A program made the position numbers and the translations under genes. A stretch of 64,000 nucleotides of DNA, from the sequence record NC_062582.1; one strand, written 5' to 3'. A model generated the notes under the pieces. It made no database searches and was not told the origin of the DNA. It saw nothing but the letters and a program-made list of their open reading frames with translations. Below are positions 2,416-43,898 of this stretch, in pieces (position 1 is the first letter of the stretch; the number at the start of each line of letters is the position of its first letter).

Positions 2416-3243
2416 TCAACGTAACCAGTTAGGTTTCCGTGGTGGAGCTTTACGCTCCCAACCAAGAGTCTTAGCCAGTTCAGTAACATCAGCACTATCG
2501 CTCTCTAAGCCAATGTTAGCACGTTTACGCGCTTCATCTTGCAAAGCCCAGAGAACGTCAGGGGTAATAACTCGTTCGGTCTCAGAGAAGCTCTCAAGAG
2601 CTGGAGAGTTATATTTGTTAGCAGTAAAGATACCACCCTCACCAACGAAGTCCCAAGTAGAGATTTCACGGGTATACTTGATACCACGCATCATGTCATC
2701 TTGAGTAATCGACCGTACAGAGAAATAAGTGTTGATCGATGGGTTATCCAAAGAATCCTGAAGGACCTGTTTAAAAGGACCAAAAGGTTTAACTTCAGCT
2801 ACTACCATTTTAACGCGTTCGCCGTTTTCGTTAACACCATCAATAATGGACAGAGAACGAATGTGTGCACATACACGGTTGTCATCAATCTGACGAATAC
2901 GGCCGAGGTACTGTGGATCGCTCATTGGTTGACGAACGACCTTACCACCCAGTAACAAATCTTGGAAAGGTTCAGGGTGTTTGAATTCAGCAAAGAGTAC
3001 GCCTTTCTTTAAACGACGCATCAAAGGAGAATCAGGAGCGAACATCGAAACGCCGCTCGCTTCATCGTAGAACATACCTGCCGAGTTCTTAGTACCGTAA
3101 CTGCCAACGACGATTGTGTAATAGCCGTCAGCAGATGGAGTAAGGATACCTTTCTTGTTGGTACCGGCAAGCATGGTGCAGCCAACAGTAACAACTGATG
3201 GCGGTGTAGGGATCTGTGGATTTGAAGACATGTTGAATCGCAT
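2416..3243 (-). CDS. prohead (head maturation) protease, phiKZ gp175/SPN3US gp245-like
   Basis: Motifs GVLFAEFKHPE (His), RIRQIDDNRVCAHI, EVKPFGP, FSVRS (Ser), TWDFVGEGGI; C-terminal ALE/GLE autocleavage-type sites; synteny; start moved to the ATG at 3243 (AAGGA RBS). Confidence 0.85.
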   Translation of the reverse strand: MRFNMSSNPQIPTPPSVVTVGCTMLAGTNKKGILTPSADGYYTIVVGSYGTKNSAGMFYDEASGVSMFAPDSPLMRRLKKGVLFAEFKHPEPFQDLLLGGKVVRQPMSDPQYLGRIRQIDDNRVCAHIRSLSIIDGVNENGERVKMVVAEVKPFGPFKQVLQDSLDNPSINTYFSVRSITQDDMMRGIKYTREISTWDFVGEGGIFTANKYNSPALESFSETERVITPDVLWALQDEARKRANIGLESDSADVTELAKTLGWERKAPPRKPNWLR

Positions 3244-3256
3244 AGGGAATTCCTTA

Positions 3257-3979
3257 TTAAGTCCTATATAATTCTTCAATCATCTCCACAGATTCAGATT
3301 CGTTCACCAATGCAGAGTTAATACCCTCAGCGAAGAACGCACCGTTAAGCTTAGAAGTTGTATCAGAGGTGTTCCAAATAACCGACCGGAATGGAATGAC
3401 CACTGGCGGGTTAGTTGTAGCAAAACCATAACTTTGTAAAACGTGACGATACAAACGAGTCATGTCTAATGGGTCACGAGTGATCGTTGAGATAATCAGT
3501 TCAATAACAGAACGACTACCCAAGTTAACCCCTGCGTGTTCCACAGCTGTTTCAAACATGTTTGCAATATCAAAGTAGTTCATATACCAAGGGATGTTCC
3601 CTTTAGCTACAAACTCGTCGTACATGTAATACGTCAATGTATCCGTAACAACCAAAGCTGTCGTGTAGATAACTTTATCACCTGGTTCAAAAGAGAACTC
3701 AAAGTAAGGGTTACCATCGACAACAACTCGTTCAGTAGAACTAGGTCGAATACGCATCATTGCAATTGTGTTGTTTACCGCGTAGTAAGATTCTTCCATA
3801 ATGATCGGGAAGAAACCAAATACGAAAATCTCAGAACCAATTACCGCTAATTTCTTAGCAGTGAAACGTTCAGGGACATGAATCTTACACGGTCGGTTAG
3901 TAACGATCGAACCATCTTCTAATTCGACCAAGTGTTCACGTACGCGATCAGCATCACGCACTAAGGCTTTAATATCCAT
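3257..3979 (-). CDS. virion RNA polymerase beta' C-terminal subunit (phiKZ gp176/SPN3US gp244-like)
   Basis: Synteny next to protease; C-terminal IPFRSV..TSDTTSKLNGAFFAEGINSAL resembles beta' C-terminal region; start at ATG 3979 (AAGGA RBS). Confidence 0.7.
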   Translation of the reverse strand: MDIKALVRDADRVREHLVELEDGSIVTNRPCKIHVPERFTAKKLAVIGSEIFVFGFFPIIMEESYYAVNNTIAMMRIRPSSTERVVVDGNPYFEFSFEPGDKVIYTTALVVTDTLTYYMYDEFVAKGNIPWYMNYFDIANMFETAVEHAGVNLGSRSVIELIISTITRDPLDMTRLYRHVLQSYGFATTNPPVVIPFRSVIWNTSDTTSKLNGAFFAEGINSALVNESESVEMIEELYRT

Positions 3980-4331
3980 GCTTAGTCCTTTGAAGTTCAG
4001 CAACAGAAGGAGGGAGTTCTTTAACTACATCATTAACATGTTGTTTAAATTTATTCCCAGTGTAAGCAGCTTTGCGTACACGTTCCTCATGCATCAAAGG
4101 AGAACCTTGTTGAATATCAATCAAACGAGTGCAACGCTCGGTATTGTTCCAAGTAGGGTCAATACCTTCAGCATCACATTCACCTTGAGCGGCAGCGCGA
4201 GCTGCTTCAATCTCATTACCAGCCTTCTTCATGGTGACGTCAATAGACTCACCTCGCCGTTCTTCCAAACGGGCGAGGCGTCGTTTAAGTTCATCAGGAC
4301 CCCATGCTTCTGTAGAGGACTGGTTTACACT
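3969..4331 (-). CDS. 120-codon ORF, probably translated as a -1 frameshift extension of the upstream head gene
   Basis: Frame is open from the slippery heptamer at 4331-4337 to the stop at 3969; protein-like helical sequence; no well-spaced SD/start of its own. Confidence 0.55.
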   Translation of the reverse strand, partial: SVNQSSTEAWGPDELKRRLARLEERRGESIDVTMKKAGNEIEAARAAAQGECDAEGIDPTWNNTERCTRLIDIQQGSPLMHEERVRKAAYTGNKFKQHVNDVVKELPPSVAELQRTKHGY

Positions 4332-6166
4332 AAAGGGGTTTCTTCCTCTTCAGCATTCTCCAGATCCGTCTCAGCAGCATTTTCTTCAGTATCTTCCAAA
4401 GTATCGCTGGTCTCTTCTACATCGCTAGTTTCGGTTTCATCACCGGATTCCAGTTCAGCGTAAGGATCATCTTCTACTTCTTCGGTTTCTGTGGTTTCGG
4501 TCTCATCAGTAAAGTCACTGGTATCTTCGGTCTCGGTTTGTTCTACTTCACCACCGAATTCAGTTTCTTCAACTTCATTGATGTTATCCACAACTTCAAC
4601 ATCGTCTACAACAAGCTCAGGTGCTTCTGGAGCTTCTTCTTCATCAATCTTAACCGCTAGGATACCTTCATCGATATCAACGCCAGTTTCGTCCAGCACG
4701 CCTGTATCAGGTACAGCGTTAGGATCGATAATAGCGGTATAGCTACCAACAGTAATCTGTTTAGCCAAGAAGATAGCAGTCAGGGTAATGATTGCCTGAG
4801 TACTCAATTCACGCAGAGTTGCACCAGGGAAATCTTGACCATATTCGTCAATAGCTTCCAAGAACAGTTTGTAGTTAGAGTCTGGGAAATACACGTCGAC
4901 GATCAAAGTAGCGAATGTCTTGTAAGCATTCTTGAGATCATCACGACCCAACTTACGAAGAGCGGCTTGCATGCGCAGATCAATCTGATCGATTGGGTAA
5001 TCTTTCAGAGCACCATCACGAGCCATAGTCAGGAAGGTAGTGATTACGTCATTACGAGTTTGACGATCAGCATAATCGATTGCAGCTTGTTTGATCAGCG
5101 GATAGATAGTCAACCAACGCTTGATGTACTGTTCACGACCACGTTCAATTTGCTCAAGCATGGTAATGCCTGGATTATCTACAGCGGCACCCAGTACAGC
5201 TTGGATATCACCACCAGCGATCAGCCATGGACCCGATACGTCGTTGTTAACAATAACAACAGCACGACGGGTATCGATTGGATTGGTAGCTTCGTTACGC
5301 AGAATCAACTCACCACGTTCACGTTGGTCAGCACGCAGCATGTAAGCACGACCCAGATAGAAACCAAAGCACTCGTGCATCAGTTCCATCTTAGTGGTCC
5401 AAGTGCCTACGTCAACACCCGGTACGTTAACAGGGTTATGCATGTAGTTACCACACAGGAAATAAGCCAGTGCAATATCGTCTACGTTGAATGGTTGTGC
5501 TTGCAGTGACATGTAAGGCAAGGCATTAATATTAACTTCCCCGTCGGAACCGAAAAGACTTTCCCAAACACGTTCAAGACGTTCGGCACCCAATTGCAAT
5601 GCCCATTCAGTAACTTCTTCTTGTTCCAGGTGTGGGTTGTTAACAGAGATGTCTTCGATGATCTGATCAGCACTAACAGGAGGCAGACGATAAGTAGTGT
5701 AAGCCTGTAGAGGACGAACAGAACTGTAGCTGGTGTTAACATGGTTTACCAAGACAGGACTATCATGGATCGCTGCGTAAATGAATGGTTCAACACGATA
5801 CTCAGGTTGGCTAGTACGTGCTTGCAGGTTAGCAAAGAAGCTATGCATATCTTTGATAGCAGGGATGATAACGTTGTTCGTAGTGAATAGAGTCTTAGAC
5901 AGACCCAGGTGAACGTTCTCGATCAGAGCAGCGCGAGTATCTTGTTCGATAGGAAGTGTTTCAGCGTTTACTTCCTCAAGGTGGTTCTCAACAGACACCG
6001 CCAGTTCATCGGTCAGTTCAACGTCTTGTGGAGCTTCATCAACGTTGTAGCTGTTGGCAAATTGAGCCAGTGGATATTCGTTACTAGCAAACGTCAGTAC
6101 TTTACCATCGCGGGTCAGCATCTGTGCTGCGTCGCGTACAGCGTTAATAGTTTCGGCAATACTCAT
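4325..6166 (-). CDS. virion head protein, phiKZ gp177/SPN3US gp243-like, with acidic C-terminal tail
   Basis: 613 aa; syntenic position between vRNAP genes; about 120-aa D/E/T-rich tail. Confidence 0.65.
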   Translation of the reverse strand: MSIAETINAVRDAAQMLTRDGKVLTFASNEYPLAQFANSYNVDEAPQDVELTDELAVSVENHLEEVNAETLPIEQDTRAALIENVHLGLSKTLFTTNNVIIPAIKDMHSFFANLQARTSQPEYRVEPFIYAAIHDSPVLVNHVNTSYSSVRPLQAYTTYRLPPVSADQIIEDISVNNPHLEQEEVTEWALQLGAERLERVWESLFGSDGEVNINALPYMSLQAQPFNVDDIALAYFLCGNYMHNPVNVPGVDVGTWTTKMELMHECFGFYLGRAYMLRADQRERGELILRNEATNPIDTRRAVVIVNNDVSGPWLIAGGDIQAVLGAAVDNPGITMLEQIERGREQYIKRWLTIYPLIKQAAIDYADRQTRNDVITTFLTMARDGALKDYPIDQIDLRMQAALRKLGRDDLKNAYKTFATLIVDVYFPDSNYKLFLEAIDEYGQDFPGATLRELSTQAIITLTAIFLAKQITVGSYTAIIDPNAVPDTGVLDETGVDIDEGILAVKIDEEEAPEAPELVVDDVEVVDNINEVEETEFGGEVEQTETEDTSDFTDETETTETEEVEDDPYAELESGDETETSDVEETSDTLEDTEENAAETDLENAEEEETPLV

Positions 6167-6178
6167 TTGTTTAGTTCC

Positions 6179-6376
6179 TTACTGGCCCAGGTATTTAAGT
6201 GTCCGACCAATCAAGGCCGCTTGGATATCTTCGATTGTCAGATGCTCACCCTCAAGAGTGATAGCTGCATCGTTGTTGCCCAGGGAGCGAGCAATAGACT
6301 CGCCCCCCAGTTCAGCCACAGCAATAAGAACAGTTGTGTTCTGTGCGTAGACTACGTTACTATTTTGCTTTTCCAT
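6179..6376 (-). CDS. small hypothetical protein (possibly virion-associated)
   Basis: 65 aa; overlaps the RNAP beta stop; fills the gap in the late operon. Confidence 0.6.
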   Translation of the reverse strand: MEKQNSNVVYAQNTTVLIAVAELGGESIARSLGNNDAAITLEGEHLTIEDIQAALIGRTLKYLGQ

Positions 6377-9300
6377 TTACTTTTCCTCGGTAAACACCAG
6401 CCACTCGTTTTGATAGAATAGAGAGCAGCAAGATTGTGGGGGCACTAATTTTGGGTGACATAACCATACGTTCTTCAACAGAGGTGTTACCAAAGATGAG
6501 ATCGATTGGGGTTCCGTCTTCTAATTCATTTCGTCCGGTCATTACTCGGGACACAACAGTTTTCATTTGGTTACCCATAACTGCTTTGTCACCAACACCA
6601 AACGGGATATCGTGGTCAATGTAAATCCGGATTACCAAAGTATCCGGTTCCATGACTTGTCCTTTAATACGGAAGCTAGAATCTACTTCACCAGTGAACA
6701 CAGGACGACCAAGTTCTTTTGCGACTTCTTCACGGATCTTATCTGCCTTCTCAGCGATCTCTCGCAGGTTGTCAGACATGTCTTCCATGTCGCCATGATA
6801 CAAGACATCTACCTTACTAACAGTACCAACCATTTTGGCGGAAGGAGCTGCACGACCCAATAGTTTCAGGGTTTCGATAGACGCTTCATCGAACAAAGTG
6901 TTCTCTGCTGTTTCAGGGTCTTCAATATAACATAGAGTTGAGTCTAGATCTAAATGGTCACCAACTTTAACCAGGTCTCGAACAGTCTGATCAAATCGAA
7001 CAGTGATATTCTTGATTTCTGTAGTTTGTGTATTGAGATCTTTTGCCAACGCAGCTGAGATTGTAGATCCGTCTTCAAGTGTGTCTAAGTTGTCAGAGAA
7101 CATTACCAAAGGTAGGGTACCAGACATCCAGCAAACTTGGTTAGGGGTGTAGCGATCCTCAGAGAAATACTTCCGGTTATATGAGATTGTATCACCCAGT
7201 TTAACTTTGTCGCCTTTCTTCAGAGAGGTTACCAAGTCATGTGGATAGTTCACACCAGCAGCAGTGCCGTGATTGACACCAAGCGGTGCTGACTCATAAG
7301 TGCCATCAGCATACTTAACTGTAATGCCGTGTTTACCGACCTCTACAACTTCACCGTCTTGATCCGCAGAAGTAGCAAAGATACTACTGTTACGCTGTGC
7401 AACGATTTGTTCATAGCCGGTACGGAGTGGGTTAACTCGATAGCCATCAGCATACATACCCTGCTGCTGTTGAATACTAATAAAGTTAACACGTTTTGCG
7501 TCGTCGTTGGTTGACGCTACTGCCAGCAAGCTGGAAGTGGAAAGCATAGTACCTGGACCGTCAGTCTCTTTGTTAAACTTACGGGTAGTACCAAACATCG
7601 AATCAATGTTAGCATCTGGTGACAGGTAAGCAATAACACCTACAGCACCGGAGTCAACGGTAGACTCAGACAGAACACCAACATCGGCCTCACCGTAGAT
7701 ACGTGTACGCGCAACCATCGAAACGGTACCACGACCACCATCACCACGATAAGTCATTGCCTCTTGCTCACGGATGTTAGCAATAGGGTTAGAGTCTTCT
7801 ACTTGTGCAACAGTCGGGTCTTGGGTAATACGGCGCCATACTTCATGTTGATCCAGAACGATCTGCTGATCAGAAGAACCTTCACGAGAGTTAAAGCGAC
7901 GGACAGCGGCAGACAAGGAACTATGAATAGTACCAGCCATACGCTCATAACCACGATAGCGCATGTAAGCGCCATCTACTTCACCTGGACTCCAGTCTGT
8001 TTGTAGGTCTTCGATAGCTTTGTAAACAAGGTCTTCGAAAGTCTCAGGGAGTTTCAATTCTTGAAGAATCTTCAAGGTGATAGGGTCAACCCATGTGGCG
8101 AACAACGAATCGACAATCCGGAGATAACGGGCTGATAAACCAACCGACTCCAGAATACGATAGTAAACGTCTTTACTGTCAAAGTCATGACGAGTAAATG
8201 TACGAAGTGATTGGTGATAACGTTTCAGGCCACCTAGTACCAATTGTGCTTTGTAGTTAGAACGAGGGAATACCAGAATCTGATCAGCGAATGCCAAAGT
8301 AAATTCATCTGGACTAACAACGATCTTAGTACCACGTTGATGAGCGATGTATTCAACTCCCAACGAATCGATCAAAGCACCGAGACCTTTGTGGTAAGCC
8401 AGCACCAAACCAACTGGAAGTTCTTTGTTAGATACCGAAATGTTGATAGCTTCGATAGGAGCCTTAGAAAGGTTCAGACCAAGCAGTTCTACAATCGTGC
8501 CCATTGGTTCCAGTTCACGAGTGGCAGATTCTAACAGATAGAAAGTACCAGCATCATCTACCAGAATTGGTTCGCCTTCACGAACACCAGTCATCACATA
8601 ACCGGGCTTTTCATAATCTTCAACACTCAGACTAAACTTAGTTTGGAAATAATCCTTACGTTTGCTGTAGTCAAAATAGAAGTGGTTCTTACCGTTATCA
8701 AAACCAGCAAAGGTTTTACCCAACGAAGTATAAACACGGGGCAAATGATAAGCCGATTGATCCAGTTCACTGAATTTAGGGTTAGTTACAGTATCGTTCG
8801 TTGCATCTGTAGCACGACTTGTAATCTGACGTGACAACCATAGATCATAGTCGTTGTCAGCGCGCTCAGAGCGCATTACAAACGTTTTGTTAATGTAACT
8901 AGTCAGAGCTACCTTTAACGGACTAACCTTGCGATACGGGATGTCAGTGCGTTGTTGACGTTGACGAGAAATAACGCCGTTAGCTTTAAAGCGACCATCT
9001 TTGTCAATAACCGGAATACGGAAATGGAGTTGAGATGCACGACCACGAATAGGTTTAACAGTAACGTTAAAACTCAGTGTGTGGTTGTTAATGTCTTCGT
9101 CTTCACGAACCTTAACATCAATAACAGAAACACCACCTGCTTGAATACCGATAATCGATTGCAGAATAAACTTAGGCAACAGGACTTTGTTAAACTTCCG
9201 CATCATTGCTTGGTGCTTAGAAGAAAGCATCGATTTGTCAATGATAGTCGAAGTGTCTTTATAACTAGTCTTTGGTACTTCCAAGTCTTCCGGATGAATC

Positions 9301-10769
9301 TCCATGGCTTCTTTAATAGTCAGACCACTACCGAATGGATCGGGCATGGTGTGATAGCGCATGGCGTCATCGACGGTCTGTTCAAAGGTACGGTCAGAGA
9401 TAATACCTGCATTAAACAACTCGTGTGCTTTACCGGCTACGGTATCGGCATACTGGTCACCTACAGAGAACTTCTCTACAACTCGTTTAGCAACTTTACT
9501 TTCAGCGATTTTAAGCGCCTTAGTTTCATCTACCAAACCTGCGTTGTCTTTCTCGATGATCAGAGTAGTTTCATCCAGATCCGATTCGGGAGGAGGCTGA
9601 TACGTTACTTCCATCAAGTCCAGGTCAAAGGTACGAACAATCCGTGAGGGAGGTTTAGCCTGACCACTATCTTCTTCTGTAGTGTCACTAAGAATCTCTT
9701 CCTTCTGATTGGCTTTAACGTCATCTACTTCTTCAGGATCGATTTCACCGGCAGGAGTTGTGATGTCGTCATTGTCTTCTGGTTGCTCCAGTTCAATGGT
9801 AGACATGTCGACTTCTGTTTCGATAAGAGTATCGTTACCATGAGCGAATTCAGTCAGAGTAGTAAACAGTGAAATCAGTTTACGTTGCATCGAGTCAGGG
9901 GTAAAGAAAGCTTCCATACCAAACTCGTCAATATAAGTACCGACGTCTGCACCTTCACCAAAAGCTTCCAGAGAAGGTTTCTCTTCTTCAACTTCGTTGT
10001 CTGGTTGTTGACGCCATTCCTCAAGCTTACCCAAGTTCATGACAAAGAAATTACCTTGTACACGAATCAGGAAGTTAATCTTGTCATAAGAAGCTTTAGG
10101 GATTTTACTGAGGTAACTGGTTTCACGTTCACTACCAAAGAAGCGGTAAAGGTCAAACACGTTAAGAGCAGCAAAGCTACGGAAGTTCTCTAAAAGATCC
10201 TGAGTTGTATTTCGGGTCAGTTGTTTAAACTGAGACATCGTTGGCATGTATTCAGGAACATGCAATTCAATGAACTGGTTCCAATCCGGAAAACGTTTGC
10301 AGGATTCAGCAACACCTTCCCAGAAAGTATCAGTAATGTTCAACCAACGATAGTAGTTAGCTTTATAAGAACTTGTATACTTGTAAAGGGGATTCAACAT
10401 GCTGTAGTTAAAGATAGCTACGTTAGCAATGTTGAGTTTTACAGCGGCATCTTTACGAAGTGGTTTGAAGAAGCGGTGGTTACGACGGAAATCATTTTCC
10501 AGTGTCTGTGGCAAAACACTGGTGCGTCGTGGGTTACCGACTAGCGAATCCAGTTCGACTTTTTGCTCGATGAAAACTTTCCCTTTAAGCTTGGCGAATA
10601 CCGGGTCCGCTTGTGACGGTCCCAGTACTGCTGTATTGTCTTCCAGAAAATGGTAGACGGTCTCTAAAGGAAGATCGAGTTTCTTGATGGCATGGAGTCT
10701 CGGCTGCTGCAATTCGGACGACTGTTTGAGTCCGAAATTCTTAAGAAACAATGGGATCTTTAAACGCAT
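6360..10769 (-). CDS. virion RNA polymerase beta subunit, N-terminal part (phiKZ gp178/SPN3US gp241-like)
   Basis: 1469 aa; beta motifs (RVNFISIQQQQG, PLRTGYE, EDGSTIS, GDKAVMGNQMKTVVS, DGTPIDLIF); acidic N-terminal linker typical of vRNAP. Confidence 0.9.
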   Translation of the reverse strand: MRLKIPLFLKNFGLKQSSELQQPRLHAIKKLDLPLETVYHFLEDNTAVLGPSQADPVFAKLKGKVFIEQKVELDSLVGNPRRTSVLPQTLENDFRRNHRFFKPLRKDAAVKLNIANVAIFNYSMLNPLYKYTSSYKANYYRWLNITDTFWEGVAESCKRFPDWNQFIELHVPEYMPTMSQFKQLTRNTTQDLLENFRSFAALNVFDLYRFFGSERETSYLSKIPKASYDKINFLIRVQGNFFVMNLGKLEEWRQQPDNEVEEEKPSLEAFGEGADVGTYIDEFGMEAFFTPDSMQRKLISLFTTLTEFAHGNDTLIETEVDMSTIELEQPEDNDDITTPAGEIDPEEVDDVKANQKEEILSDTTEEDSGQAKPPSRIVRTFDLDLMEVTYQPPPESDLDETTLIIEKDNAGLVDETKALKIAESKVAKRVVEKFSVGDQYADTVAGKAHELFNAGIISDRTFEQTVDDAMRYHTMPDPFGSGLTIKEAMEIHPEDLEVPKTSYKDTSTIIDKSMLSSKHQAMMRKFNKVLLPKFILQSIIGIQAGGVSVIDVKVREDEDINNHTLSFNVTVKPIRGRASQLHFRIPVIDKDGRFKANGVISRQRQQRTDIPYRKVSPLKVALTSYINKTFVMRSERADNDYDLWLSRQITSRATDATNDTVTNPKFSELDQSAYHLPRVYTSLGKTFAGFDNGKNHFYFDYSKRKDYFQTKFSLSVEDYEKPGYVMTGVREGEPILVDDAGTFYLLESATRELEPMGTIVELLGLNLSKAPIEAINISVSNKELPVGLVLAYHKGLGALIDSLGVEYIAHQRGTKIVVSPDEFTLAFADQILVFPRSNYKAQLVLGGLKRYHQSLRTFTRHDFDSKDVYYRILESVGLSARYLRIVDSLFATWVDPITLKILQELKLPETFEDLVYKAIEDLQTDWSPGEVDGAYMRYRGYERMAGTIHSSLSAAVRRFNSREGSSDQQIVLDQHEVWRRITQDPTVAQVEDSNPIANIREQEAMTYRGDGGRGTVSMVARTRIYGEADVGVLSESTVDSGAVGVIAYLSPDANIDSMFGTTRKFNKETDGPGTMLSTSSLLAVASTNDDAKRVNFISIQQQQGMYADGYRVNPLRTGYEQIVAQRNSSIFATSADQDGEVVEVGKHGITVKYADGTYESAPLGVNHGTAAGVNYPHDLVTSLKKGDKVKLGDTISYNRKYFSEDRYTPNQVCWMSGTLPLVMFSDNLDTLEDGSTISAALAKDLNTQTTEIKNITVRFDQTVRDLVKVGDHLDLDSTLCYIEDPETAENTLFDEASIETLKLLGRAAPSAKMVGTVSKVDVLYHGDMEDMSDNLREIAEKADKIREEVAKELGRPVFTGEVDSSFRIKGQVMEPDTLVIRIYIDHDIPFGVGDKAVMGNQMKTVVSRVMTGRNELEDGTPIDLIFGNTSVEERMVMSPKISAPTILLLSILSKRVAGVYRGKVNGKAK

Positions 10770-32828: not shown

Positions 32829-32883
32829 TTGAATCCAGTGTAATGGTTTGTAGTTTATAAGAAAATACCCAATGGAGGTACGT

Positions 32884-33369
32884 ATGGTTATCACATACGC
32901 ATCTGTAGATAAAATTGATTCTCAAGTTAGAATCGGTCTACCAATTGGACATTATGGAAAGGGTGATGATCTGTCAGTCTTGCCTGATATGTTAGGTGAT
33001 TGGAATATAAGAACGATTACGGAAGATCGTAATCCTGGAACTGGGTATATCGTTGCAGTGCCCTCAAATATGAGAACACGTTTAATCTATAAAGAAGGTC
33101 GTATTAATTGGCTAATCGCTCTAGGGTTTAGTTATGCGCAAGCAGAACTTTATTACAGGGCTTCTAACAGAGTCAAAAAGAAATGGGACCTTCGGGTAGC
33201 CATGTTTGTTCTAAATAATTTTACGACTGACCCTTTCATTATAGATGGAATTCTGACGCACGAGAATCCAAAGTTTGCTTGCGTTGAGAATAGAATACAC
33301 GTTAAACTATCTCAACAAAAGATTGTTTCCGGATGCCAAATCCTAGTTAACATGCGCGGTTTAAAATAG
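32884..33369 (+). CDS. hypothetical protein
   Basis: GGAGGT RBS before ATG 32884. Confidence 0.65.
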   Translation: MVITYASVDKIDSQVRIGLPIGHYGKGDDLSVLPDMLGDWNIRTITEDRNPGTGYIVAVPSNMRTRLIYKEGRINWLIALGFSYAQAELYYRASNRVKKKWDLRVAMFVLNNFTTDPFIIDGILTHENPKFACVENRIHVKLSQQKIVSGCQILVNMRGLK

Positions 33370-42433: not shown

Positions 42434-43861
42434 ATGACTGAACAAACTAAAGTTTTTGATGTTACCCCTGTTGATGTAGTTATCGCCCCTCCACAACCAC
42501 CGGTACGTGTCGTTAAACCACTAGAAGAACTAAGTACCTGTTCTTGGATGCTGGAAAAAGACCGTAAGCTTGCTCGCGTTGTAGTAATCGATGACGTTGT
42601 CGAACACAAGAACGCCGATAAATTGGAACTCTGTATTGTTGGTGGCTGGCAATGTGTATCGGCTAAAGGTAACTTTAAGAAAGGTGATCGTGCGGTATAC
42701 TGCGAAATCGATTCCCTGCTACCTACCGATTATGCCGACTTCAATTTCCTCGAAAACCGTAACTCGGATAACCGTCAAATTAAAGGTAAACGTTACCACC
42801 GTTTGCTCACCGCAAAACTACGTAAAGAACTTTCCCAAGGTCTTCTGATCCCAGTCCCTGCAAAATTCAAAGATGCTCCGGTTGACACCAACCTGACTCT
42901 GGAACTGGGTATTCTGAAATATGAAGGTAAGCCAACTCCTGAACAGCGTGAGCGTGATTCCCGTCCTAAGACGGCATACGTTCGTTTGGCTAGCTGGTTC
43001 CTTAAAGGTCTGAGTGGCGCACTGTTGCCATGGCCTCGTCAGCTGATTAAGTCTGACCAAGATCGTGTACAGAACAAGTCTACTGCATTTGAAACAGCTA
43101 AAGCAGCAGGTACTAAGTTTGAGGTTACCTATAAGCTTGATGGTAGCTCGATGACTTCTTTCTTGATCAACGATGAAGGTACATTGCGTAGCGGTGTCTG
43201 CTCGCGTAACTACGAGCTTCAACTGGGTGGTAAGGAATACAGCTTCTGGGATAAACTCCGTCTGTACATCGGCACCACTATGATGCGTAACCGTCGTTTC
43301 TTCGAGACCTGGAAATGGAACAAAGTTGAATGGGTTAATACATCTGCCGGTGTATCTGATAATTTTACCGAAGCCTATACCAAACTGAAGATTGCTGACA
43401 AACTCTGGAAGTATTATCAGGATACTGGTGTAGCTATTACGGTGCAAGGTGAATTGATTGGTCCAACCATTCAACAAAACTTTGAAGGTGTGGAAGATAA
43501 CCAATACTACATCTACACTGTCTACAAAGATGGTTACAAAGAAGTATTGCCTGCTGAAGCACGTGAAATCGTTAAAGCGTTGGGTCTGAAGTATATCCCA
43601 CTGATTGATGAGGAATGGGTAATTCCAGAAGACTGGACTGTTCAAGACATTCTGAAAATGGCTGAAGGGCAGCGTGCATTTAACCAGAGCAAACAAACTT
43701 TCCGTGAAGGTCTGGTGTTTAAAGGTACAGATGAAGTCATTAGCTGGAAAGCTATCAGCAACTCTTACCTGCTCTGGAAAACGAAACAGGAAGAAAAAGA
43801 AGCCAAGGAAGCAGAAGCTGCCGCCATTACTGAAGGCGAAGGTGCCGGTATTCCGGTATGA
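42434..43861 (+). CDS. RNA ligase, DRB0094-like family (N-terminal tRNA-binding OB fold plus ligase)
   Basis: HKNADKLEL..VGGWQCV..KGDRAVYCEIDSLLP; motif I TYKLDGSS; QGELIG; REGLVFK; WKAISNSYLL. Confidence 0.88.
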   Translation: MTEQTKVFDVTPVDVVIAPPQPPVRVVKPLEELSTCSWMLEKDRKLARVVVIDDVVEHKNADKLELCIVGGWQCVSAKGNFKKGDRAVYCEIDSLLPTDYADFNFLENRNSDNRQIKGKRYHRLLTAKLRKELSQGLLIPVPAKFKDAPVDTNLTLELGILKYEGKPTPEQRERDSRPKTAYVRLASWFLKGLSGALLPWPRQLIKSDQDRVQNKSTAFETAKAAGTKFEVTYKLDGSSMTSFLINDEGTLRSGVCSRNYELQLGGKEYSFWDKLRLYIGTTMMRNRRFFETWKWNKVEWVNTSAGVSDNFTEAYTKLKIADKLWKYYQDTGVAITVQGELIGPTIQQNFEGVEDNQYYIYTVYKDGYKEVLPAEAREIVKALGLKYIPLIDEEWVIPEDWTVQDILKMAEGQRAFNQSKQTFREGLVFKGTDEVISWKAISNSYLLWKTKQEEKEAKEAEAAAITEGEGAGIPV

Positions 43862-43869
43862 AATAACCA

Positions 43870-43898
43870 CAATAGAAAAAGTTCTAAATCTATATAAC
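43870..43898 (+). promoter_or_regulatory. putative early promoter (variant)
   Basis: CAATAGAAAAAGTTCTAAATCTATATAAC. Confidence 0.6.

Follow-up and report, generated by a model that had tools for sequence, protein, structure and literature searches.

Comparative sequence evidence for a probable programmed -1 frameshift at the end of the gp177-like head protein gene of Pseudomonas phage Phabio and related jumbo phages

Sequence comparison across diverged relatives makes it very likely that a programmed -1 frameshift at the 3' end of gp261, the gp177-like head protein gene of Pseudomonas phage Phabio, adds approximately 120 residues to a minority of its product; neither protein nor ribosome-profiling data are available. 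The site was proposed in an earlier note on the 64,000-nt stretch of NC_062582.1 analysed here (the window), which suggested that the gene yields forms of 613 and about 732 aa, and the comparison supports this proposal. If correct, phiKZ-like phages (Chimalliviridae) would thereby gain their first described recoding site, present in at least 18 lineages. No report of it was found in the searched literature on frameshifting in jumbo phages or Chimalliviridae, a search which did not cover two proteome papers (PMC2871425; PMC3323674).

The zero-frame product of gp261 (4325..6166, minus strand) is a head protein of 613 aa which matches phrog_3841 in a PHROG search (E 8.6e-146) and shares 41.6% identity with PHIKZ177. 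Its translation ends in an acidic tail and carries an S-V-E motif at residues 58-60. By both sequence and synteny it belongs to the family of phiKZ gp177, 201phi2-1 gp271 and SPN3US gp243, and all loci share a gene order with the vRNAP beta gene on one side of the gp177-like gene and the gp176-like and protease genes on the other. In Phabio these neighbors are the vRNAP beta-subunit gene (6360-10769), upstream of gp261; gp259 (3257..3979, minus strand), a phiKZ gp176-like virion structural protein (phrog_2926, E 1.3e-98); and gp258 (2416..3243, minus strand), the prohead maturation protease of the Peptidase_S80 type (PF20034, E 1.2e-95). No convincing terminator was found in the gp261-gp259 interval of Phabio. 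A terminator-like hairpin is seen at the corresponding position in phiKZ and PS119XW.

On the minus strand the final codons of gp261 read ACC CCT TTA GTG TAA. They contain the in-frame X_XXY_YYZ heptamer C_CCT_TTA (4331-4337), the proposed shift site, one codon before the zero-frame TAA (4325..4327), and the heptamer satisfies the rule that both tRNAs re-pair at a canonical -1 programmed ribosomal frameshift site. A TGA (4350..4352, minus strand) blocks the -1 frame four codons ahead of the CCC codon of the slip site, after which the frame stays open as an extension ORF (3969..4337, minus strand) of 122 codons and a stop, the TAA at 3969-3971. Annotated gp260 comprises only the last 87 of these codons, beginning at the ATG at 4230-4232. 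Most of the geometry given in the earlier note therefore held: the heptamer and its distance from the stop, the opening of the -1 frame four codons upstream (with 122 codons counted rather than 120), a GAGGTGA 16 nt ahead of the first ATG, and a GAGGA a few nucleotides 5' of the heptamer. Its statement that the ORF fills the gap to the vRNAP gene failed, as the ORF ends 11 nt inside the start of gp259 and the vRNAP gene lies on the other side of gp261.

Within the window by itself, a heptamer near a stop could still have arisen by chance. The long open frames, 19,141 codons in total, contain 34 in-frame heptamers, and in four of these cases the heptamer ends no more than 12 nt from a stop. The gp261 site is the only one followed by a long -1 ORF, of 122 codons versus 9-40 for the others. 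What raises this site above chance is its conservation in relatives. In 18 of 18 diverged lineages, whose gp177-like proteins are 36-82% identical, an in-frame slippery heptamer lies zero or one codon before a TAA and is followed by a -1 ORF. The sequence is C_CCT_TTG in nine lineages and C_CCT_TTA in seven, the first six bases being invariant across these 16, and is replaced by C_CCA_AAG in one lineage (L026) and by G_GGA_AAG in Psa21; all four heptamers figure among those that measurements in E. coli found to be shift-prone and under-represented (PMC4066793). Lineages with different heptamer types end in different zero-frame residues, which indicates that the constraint acts on the nucleotides. 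The stop follows after one codon in 17 of the 18 lineages and directly in L026, the closest relative of Phabio (72%), whose heptamer is of another type. In this lineage the heptamer is bordered by a -1-frame TGA and followed immediately by the TAA, leaving the two frames an overlap of only 10 nt, and the shift is therefore pinned to the heptamer. The heptamer was kept wherever the ORF was kept, and loss of the heptamer from a genome that retains the ORF, named in the earlier note as a refutation, was not seen. Both are absent from phiKZ, PS119XW, HPP-Temi, Noxifer, RVTF4 and D6, as established for the heptamer by direct reading of codons, and the extension is hence dispensable for the family. 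In-frame fusions of the extension to a gp177-like protein were absent from all 27 representative clusters of its family, and a metagenome scan returned only two loci. With a heptamer, a selected -1 ORF and conservation in diverged relatives, the site satisfies three of the criteria for a canonical -1 site.

The selection on the -1 frame is shown by sequence comparison and extends upstream of every possible start codon. Before the annotated ATG, the -1 frame contains no stop in any of 17 lineages, while the other frames contain 0-5, and the indel in this region is 9 nt long. Across the three codon positions the variability is 0.275, 0.205 and 0.455, and pN/pS ahead of any start codon is 0.50 in the -1 frame as opposed to 1.31 and 1.69 in the other two. 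In Phabio the first in-frame starts are a TTG at codon 24 and the ATG at codon 36. Three lineages (L019, L020 and L031) have their first canonical start only at codons 83, 62 and 70, respectively, and so carry 61-82 conserved -1-frame codons without any start.

These observations bear on the main rival reading, in which gp260 is an independent small gene initiated at the ATG at 4232 or the TTG at 4268, and the conservation further upstream reflects an RNA element together with the C-terminus of gp261. In its favor, the five annotated records examined all call either a separate small CDS or none, the methionine at -1-frame residue 36 hardly varies, and a short distance 5' of its codon there is a conserved hairpin. 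Against it, no Shine-Dalgarno (SD) sequence is found at working distance, the GAGGTGA being 16 nt off and encoding conserved residues; the open frame and coding signature precede every start codon, three lineages lack a start altogether for the stretch given above, three different slippery heptamers occupy the same place, and the start position differs between gene callers. An independent gp260 is consequently considered unlikely. Some internal initiation can nevertheless not be ruled out, given the near-invariant Met-36 and the TTG that 12 lineages carry at codon 21 or 24.

Other forms of recoding appear very unlikely. These comprise reinitiation at a non-canonical codon by the stop, a slip of the P-site tRNA only on C_CCU, and transcriptional slippage. 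The proximity of the stop to the site in all lineages would fit such events; a P-site-only slip while the Leu codon waits would yield the same frame, and UUA is among the less-used Leu codons (11% in the long ORFs of the phage). However, no -1-frame ATG, GTG or TTG lies near the stop, the sites contain no long homopolymer but only runs of at most four identical bases, and all three site types allow complete re-pairing at both codons, a condition that a slip in the P site alone does not impose. An assembly error or a decaying gene, finally, has nothing in its favor beyond the split itself and is all but excluded: 18 assemblies made independently, of isolates as well as metagenomes, share the same frame relation, which rules out the sequencing indel raised as a possible refutation in the earlier note, and the downstream ORF is under purifying selection.

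The frameshift reading can be spelled out as follows. Most ribosomes would terminate at the TAA and release the 613-aa head protein, while a minority would slip back by one base on C_CCT_TTA, the peptidyl-tRNA-Pro in the P site re-pairing from CCU to CCC and the Leu-tRNA in the A site from UUA to UUU. After the shift, some 120 codons of the -1 frame would be translated, giving the long form of approximately 732 aa. Upstream, the SD-like GAGGA (4344..4348, minus strand), 6 nt 5' of the heptamer, may help shifting. An SD-like pentamer lies 6-12 nt upstream of the heptamer in 12 of the 18 lineages and, in bins of 15 nt, 13 such pentamers fall into the nearest bin as opposed to 1-6 further upstream. 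The element is thus enriched at this spacing but not universal.

Downstream, no conserved stimulatory structure 5-9 nt from the site was detected by RNAalifold across 17 sequences, and this criterion, common but not obligatory for a canonical -1 site, is not met. When the 45 nt that follow the site were folded lineage by lineage, energies lay between 0 and -9.5 kcal/mol and z-scores averaged -0.14, and a search of Rfam gave nothing above threshold, only two chance-level matches far below the gathering scores. In the absence of a conserved 3' stimulator, shift efficiency is likely low, no more than a few per cent. In E. coli, shifting on U_UUA and U_UUG in the A site is weak, reaching 1.8-3.6 times background. 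A conserved RNA hairpin does lie inside the extension ORF (4250..4280, minus strand), with 88.5% of cells paired as opposed to 44-59% in slid controls and one pair covarying at third codon positions (CG 9, UA 5, GC 3). It starts 51 nt past the heptamer end, too far for a classical stimulator, and its role is unknown.

The AF2 model of the Phabio extension is all-helical (pLDDT 76.5), in line with the helical domain expected in the earlier note. The extension matched no Pfam or PHROG family, and its model resembled nothing in the PDB and, in BFVD, only itself and gp270 of 201phi2-1; a sequence search of the PDB with the extension of one relative (L019) likewise gave no match. As to its fate, we infer that the gp177-like body would carry the extension into the prohead, where gp258 would cut at an S-x-E motif five residues past the junction and possibly also at G-N-E further on. 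The freed helical module may then stay in the head at low copy or be cleared after a role in assembly. The first candidate motif is S-T-E at -1-frame residues 8-10 (4308..4316, minus strand); its S (residue 8) and E (residue 10) are present in 17 of 17 lineages of the Phabio extension family. The second putative motif, G-N-E at residues 40-42 (4212..4220, minus strand), coincides with a module border in relatives. The motif type was taken from PMC5694885, according to which the gp177/gp271 homologues are themselves protease substrates, cleaved at SVE-60 and AVE-61, and the SPN3US homologue is required for loading internal head proteins. S/A/G-x-E motifs are frequent by chance, and cleavage after Glu is inferred only. 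The record of 201phi2-1 carries mass-spectrometry notes on gp271, gp269 and gp268 but not on gp270, which suggests that the extension, if present in virions at all, is rare or removed.

In seven multi-module relatives, S/A/G-x-E directly precedes the core module, and it also follows the core where further modules are attached. One such insert, found in relatives only and absent from Phabio, is predicted to have a ParB/sulfiredoxin-like fold. Foldseek aligned the AF2 model of P0026 with Noc, ParB, sulfiredoxin and SbnI (E 1e-4 to 1e-3) over 80-90 residues at 3-4 A, and no Pfam match was obtained for this module; the match is one of fold and does not imply catalysis. Some relatives carry weak GNAT modules, and no enzyme is recognizable in the Phabio extension. 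One possible reading of these arrangements, for a clade of nucleus-forming jumbo phages, is frameshift-coupled cargo loading, in which a gp177-like carrier would bring interchangeable modules (helical core, ParB/sulfiredoxin-like, GNAT-like and others) into the prohead at fixed low copy, to be separated by the protease at the S/A/G-x-E borders. Taken as one joint claim, this reading is tentative and less likely than not. That the modules reach the host together with the DNA is a further possibility. The site, if it works as proposed, would add a new low-copy head or assembly component on a protein tied to internal head protein loading, and the variable modules of relatives offer a testable route through which these phages could package additional proteins in small quantity into the capsid.

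Capsid extensions by -1 frameshifting near the stop are known from gene 10A/10B of T7 and T3, Lactobacillus phage A2 and the Listeria phages A118 and A500 (PMC5009743). The Phabio layout shares with them a head gene, a shift site in the last codons, and, beside a major short form, a minor long one that carries an additional C-terminal domain. It differs in that gp261 is a gp177-like internal or assembly head protein and not the major capsid protein, and in that the extension is not an Ig-like decoration and is bordered by protease motifs; searches revealed no sequence similarity. With gpG/gpGT of lambda it shares a frameshift conserved by position across phages, and the G_GGA_AAG used by Psa21 is named as highly shift-prone (PMC5009743). 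The lambda proteins, however, belong to the tail module, are absent from virions and are not homologous to gp261, which lies in the head module. A tail assembly chaperone of the lambda G/GT type was considered and rejected, the site lying beside the prohead protease and no PHROG or Pfam chaperone match being found. The signal resembles that of dnaX in having an SD-like pentamer shortly before the heptamer (in the 12 lineages above), but lacks a conserved 3' stem-loop at the usual spacing and leads to a longer rather than a shorter product. If the inferred fate is right, an analogy may also be drawn with structural/enzyme fusions of the retrovirus type, where a minor product co-assembles and the particle protease frees its modules; the systems are unrelated, and for Phabio both cleavage and packaging are inferred only.

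The frameshift layout is unannotated in the five records examined. Recognizing it would correct the gene annotation in Phabio, 201phi2-1, Viktualia and Psa21 and add a missing gene in PhiPA3. The Arg/Leu/Glu-rich segment at the N-terminus of the extension was also considered as a general head-targeting signal, an idea rejected on the grounds that only four clusters carry the segment. In a short-query tblastn search, it matched only Phabio and 201phi2-1. The same type of segment also heads one phiKZ_IP protein family (L012/L013).

The window matches NC_062582 and MF042360 at 100%, identifying it as Pseudomonas phage Phabio (record coordinate minus 186000 gives the window coordinate). The minus strand encodes the vRNAP beta subunit gp263 (6360-10769), the 65-aa ORF gp262 (6179-6376), gp261 (4325-6166; phrog_3841, the family of phiKZ gp177 and 201phi2-1 gp271), gp260 (3969-4232; 87 aa as annotated), the gp176-like virion protein gp259 (3257-3979) and the Peptidase_S80 prohead protease gp258 (2416-3243). 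The PHIKZ177.1-like gp262 shares 17 nt with the end of the vRNAP beta gene, and a gp262-like ORF occupies the same position in all examined loci but one, that of PhiPA3, where no such CDS is annotated.

An earlier note had proposed a programmed -1 frameshift that extends gp261, and all but one of its observations held. The gene ends in the codons ACC CCT TTA GTG TAA, which contain an in-frame C_CCT_TTA heptamer (4331-4337); the -1 frame opens four codons upstream, where a TGA is found, and continues as a long ORF of 122 codons to 3969; a GAGGA element lies 6 nt 5' of the heptamer, and no usable SD precedes the first ATG. The sole error was the claim that this ORF fills the gap to the vRNAP gene: it runs into gp259 instead, the vRNAP gene being located on the opposite side of gp261. 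By itself, the heptamer is unremarkable within the single Phabio genome: the window contains 34 in-frame heptamers in 19,141 codons of long open frames, four of them no more than 12 nt from a stop. Among such near-stop heptamers, only that of gp261 precedes a long -1 ORF. Two other long open frames (42818-43897, minus strand; 32854-33369, plus strand) carry G_GGA_AAG and T_TTA_AAA in frame at most 12 nt from their stops; the -1 ORFs behind these span merely 9 and 16 codons, and both sites are likely due to chance.

With the -1 ORF as query, tblastn yielded matches in 201phi2-1 and Viktualia that begin exactly at the stop of the gp177-like gene, 92 nt before the annotated small CDS. PhiPA3 (NC_028999) shows the same layout within an unannotated 313-nt stretch between gp208 and gp207, where the end of a homologous -1 ORF of 109 codons (5276-5605 of the locus) overlaps gp207 in an ATGA. 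In total, 18 distinct lineages were collected once viral contigs, metagenomes and a 5.8-billion-protein set had been searched with profiles and contigs looked up; their gp177-like proteins share 36-82% identity (median 61%). In all 18, an in-frame slippery heptamer is followed by zero or one codon, a TAA and a -1 ORF; in Psa21, the annotated gp241 is the tail of this ORF. The heptamer is C_CCT_TTG in nine lineages, C_CCT_TTA in seven, G_GGA_AAG in Psa21 and C_CCA_AAG in L026, a locus that is the nearest relative of Phabio (72%) and nonetheless differs in its heptamer. There, a TGA directly 5' of the heptamer closes the -1 frame and a TAA directly 3' closes the zero frame, so that the two frames overlap by only 10 nt. 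The zero-frame C-terminal residues vary with the heptamer type, and it is therefore the slipperiness that is kept, not the peptide. All four heptamers are listed as shift-prone without stimulators and as under-represented in E. coli genes (Sharma et al., PMC4066793).

Both heptamer and extension are absent from phiKZ, PS119XW, HPP-Temi, Noxifer, RVTF4 and D6, which makes the feature clade-specific. Its distribution is also patchy, since it occurs in Psa21 but not in the related phages D6 and RVTF4. In the extension-less phiKZ and PS119XW, a GC-rich terminator-like hairpin lies 3' of the gp177-like gene (about 5105-5135 and about 5207-5232 of the respective loci). Ribosomal slippage is annotated in none of the five annotated records with this layout that were examined, and no report of the site was found in the full-text literature searched; mechanistically, it belongs to the same group as known frameshift-extended phage virion proteins.

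Sequence comparison makes it very likely that the stretch between the gp261 stop and the annotated gp260 start is translated. From the gp261 stop to Met-36, the -1 frame is free of stops in 17/17 lineages (up to five in the other frames), and the single indel measures 9 nt. Mean pairwise differences at codon positions 1, 2 and 3 of this stretch are 0.275, 0.205 and 0.455, and the summed pN/pS of the -1 frame is 0.50, compared with 1.31 and 1.69 for the remaining two. In most lineages the first ATG, GTG or TTG occurs no earlier than codon 21-24, and three loci of relatives (L019, L020 and L031) have none before codons 83, 62 and 70, respectively; gene callers disagree on the start sites assigned to the extension ORFs. 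HMMER searches against 1.84 billion representatives recovered 27 extension-family clusters, and no in-frame fusion to a gp177-like protein occurs among them; the out-of-frame arrangement is therefore maintained.

No conserved structure was found 5-9 nt after the slip site in the lineages aligned and folded, and an Rfam search found nothing. An SD-like pentamer lies 6-12 nt 5' of the heptamer in 12/18 lineages, at about three times the density found further up the acidic tail; however, Glu/Asp codons give rise to such pentamers, and the lineages cannot be counted as independent. A hairpin inside the extension ORF (4250-4280, minus strand) is paired in 88.5% of cells across 17 lineages and shows one covariation at a third codon position (CG 9, UA 5, GC 3), although this count is biased because the structure was taken from Phabio's own fold. 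Beginning 51 nt past the heptamer end (42 nt in the short subfamily), it is too distant for a classical stimulator, and no role can be assigned to it. By inference from E. coli data, the bare heptamer would shift at a fraction of a per cent to a few per cent in Pseudomonas.

The extension family is modular, with a core, an optional insert and alternative C-terminal modules. The helical core was modeled by AF2 with a pLDDT of 76.5, and no structural match to this model was found. Longer -1 ORFs of 230-411 codons carry extra modules (L019, 1997-3121; L020, 1928-3163; L015, 2498-3190); their insert matches phrog_17560 and is predicted to adopt a ParB/sulfiredoxin-like fold. One of several alternative C-terminal modules is weakly GNAT-like (in L020, E 3e-4, short of the Pfam cut-off). 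In Viktualia, the module attached by the proposed frameshift in Psa21 (4096-4377 of the Psa21 locus) stands alone as a downstream gene (3336-3659 of the Viktualia locus), which has an ATGA overlap with the extension ORF; in L019 it is fused and makes up the C-terminal end of the ORF. Modules have been shuffled between separate and fused states.

A paper that provides cleavage data for homologues (PMC5694885) describes such prohead proteases as cutting after Glu in S-x-E-type motifs; it also reports that gp243, the homologue in SPN3US, cannot be dispensed with and is required to load the abundant internal head proteins. Residues 58-60 of Phabio gp261 read S-V-E. In the -1 frame, 17/17 lineages have S at residue 8 and E at residue 10, and S/A/G-x-E occurs directly before the core module in seven multi-module ORFs, as well as after it where further modules are attached. 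This pattern of motifs and modules suggests that the long form may be a carrier-plus-cargo product trimmed by the prohead protease, with cleavage itself being inferred. The 201phi2-1 record holds mass-spectrometry notes on gp271, gp269 and gp268 and none on gp270, which argues against abundant packaging of the extension; it may therefore be rare or cleared after cleavage.

In two further loci of relatives (L012 and L013, 3007-4170), a 387-aa phiKZ_IP (PF12699) internal head protein with its own ATG carries at its N-terminus the same Arg/Leu/Glu-rich segment as residues 17-36 of the extension's -1 frame, a segment present in only four protein clusters.
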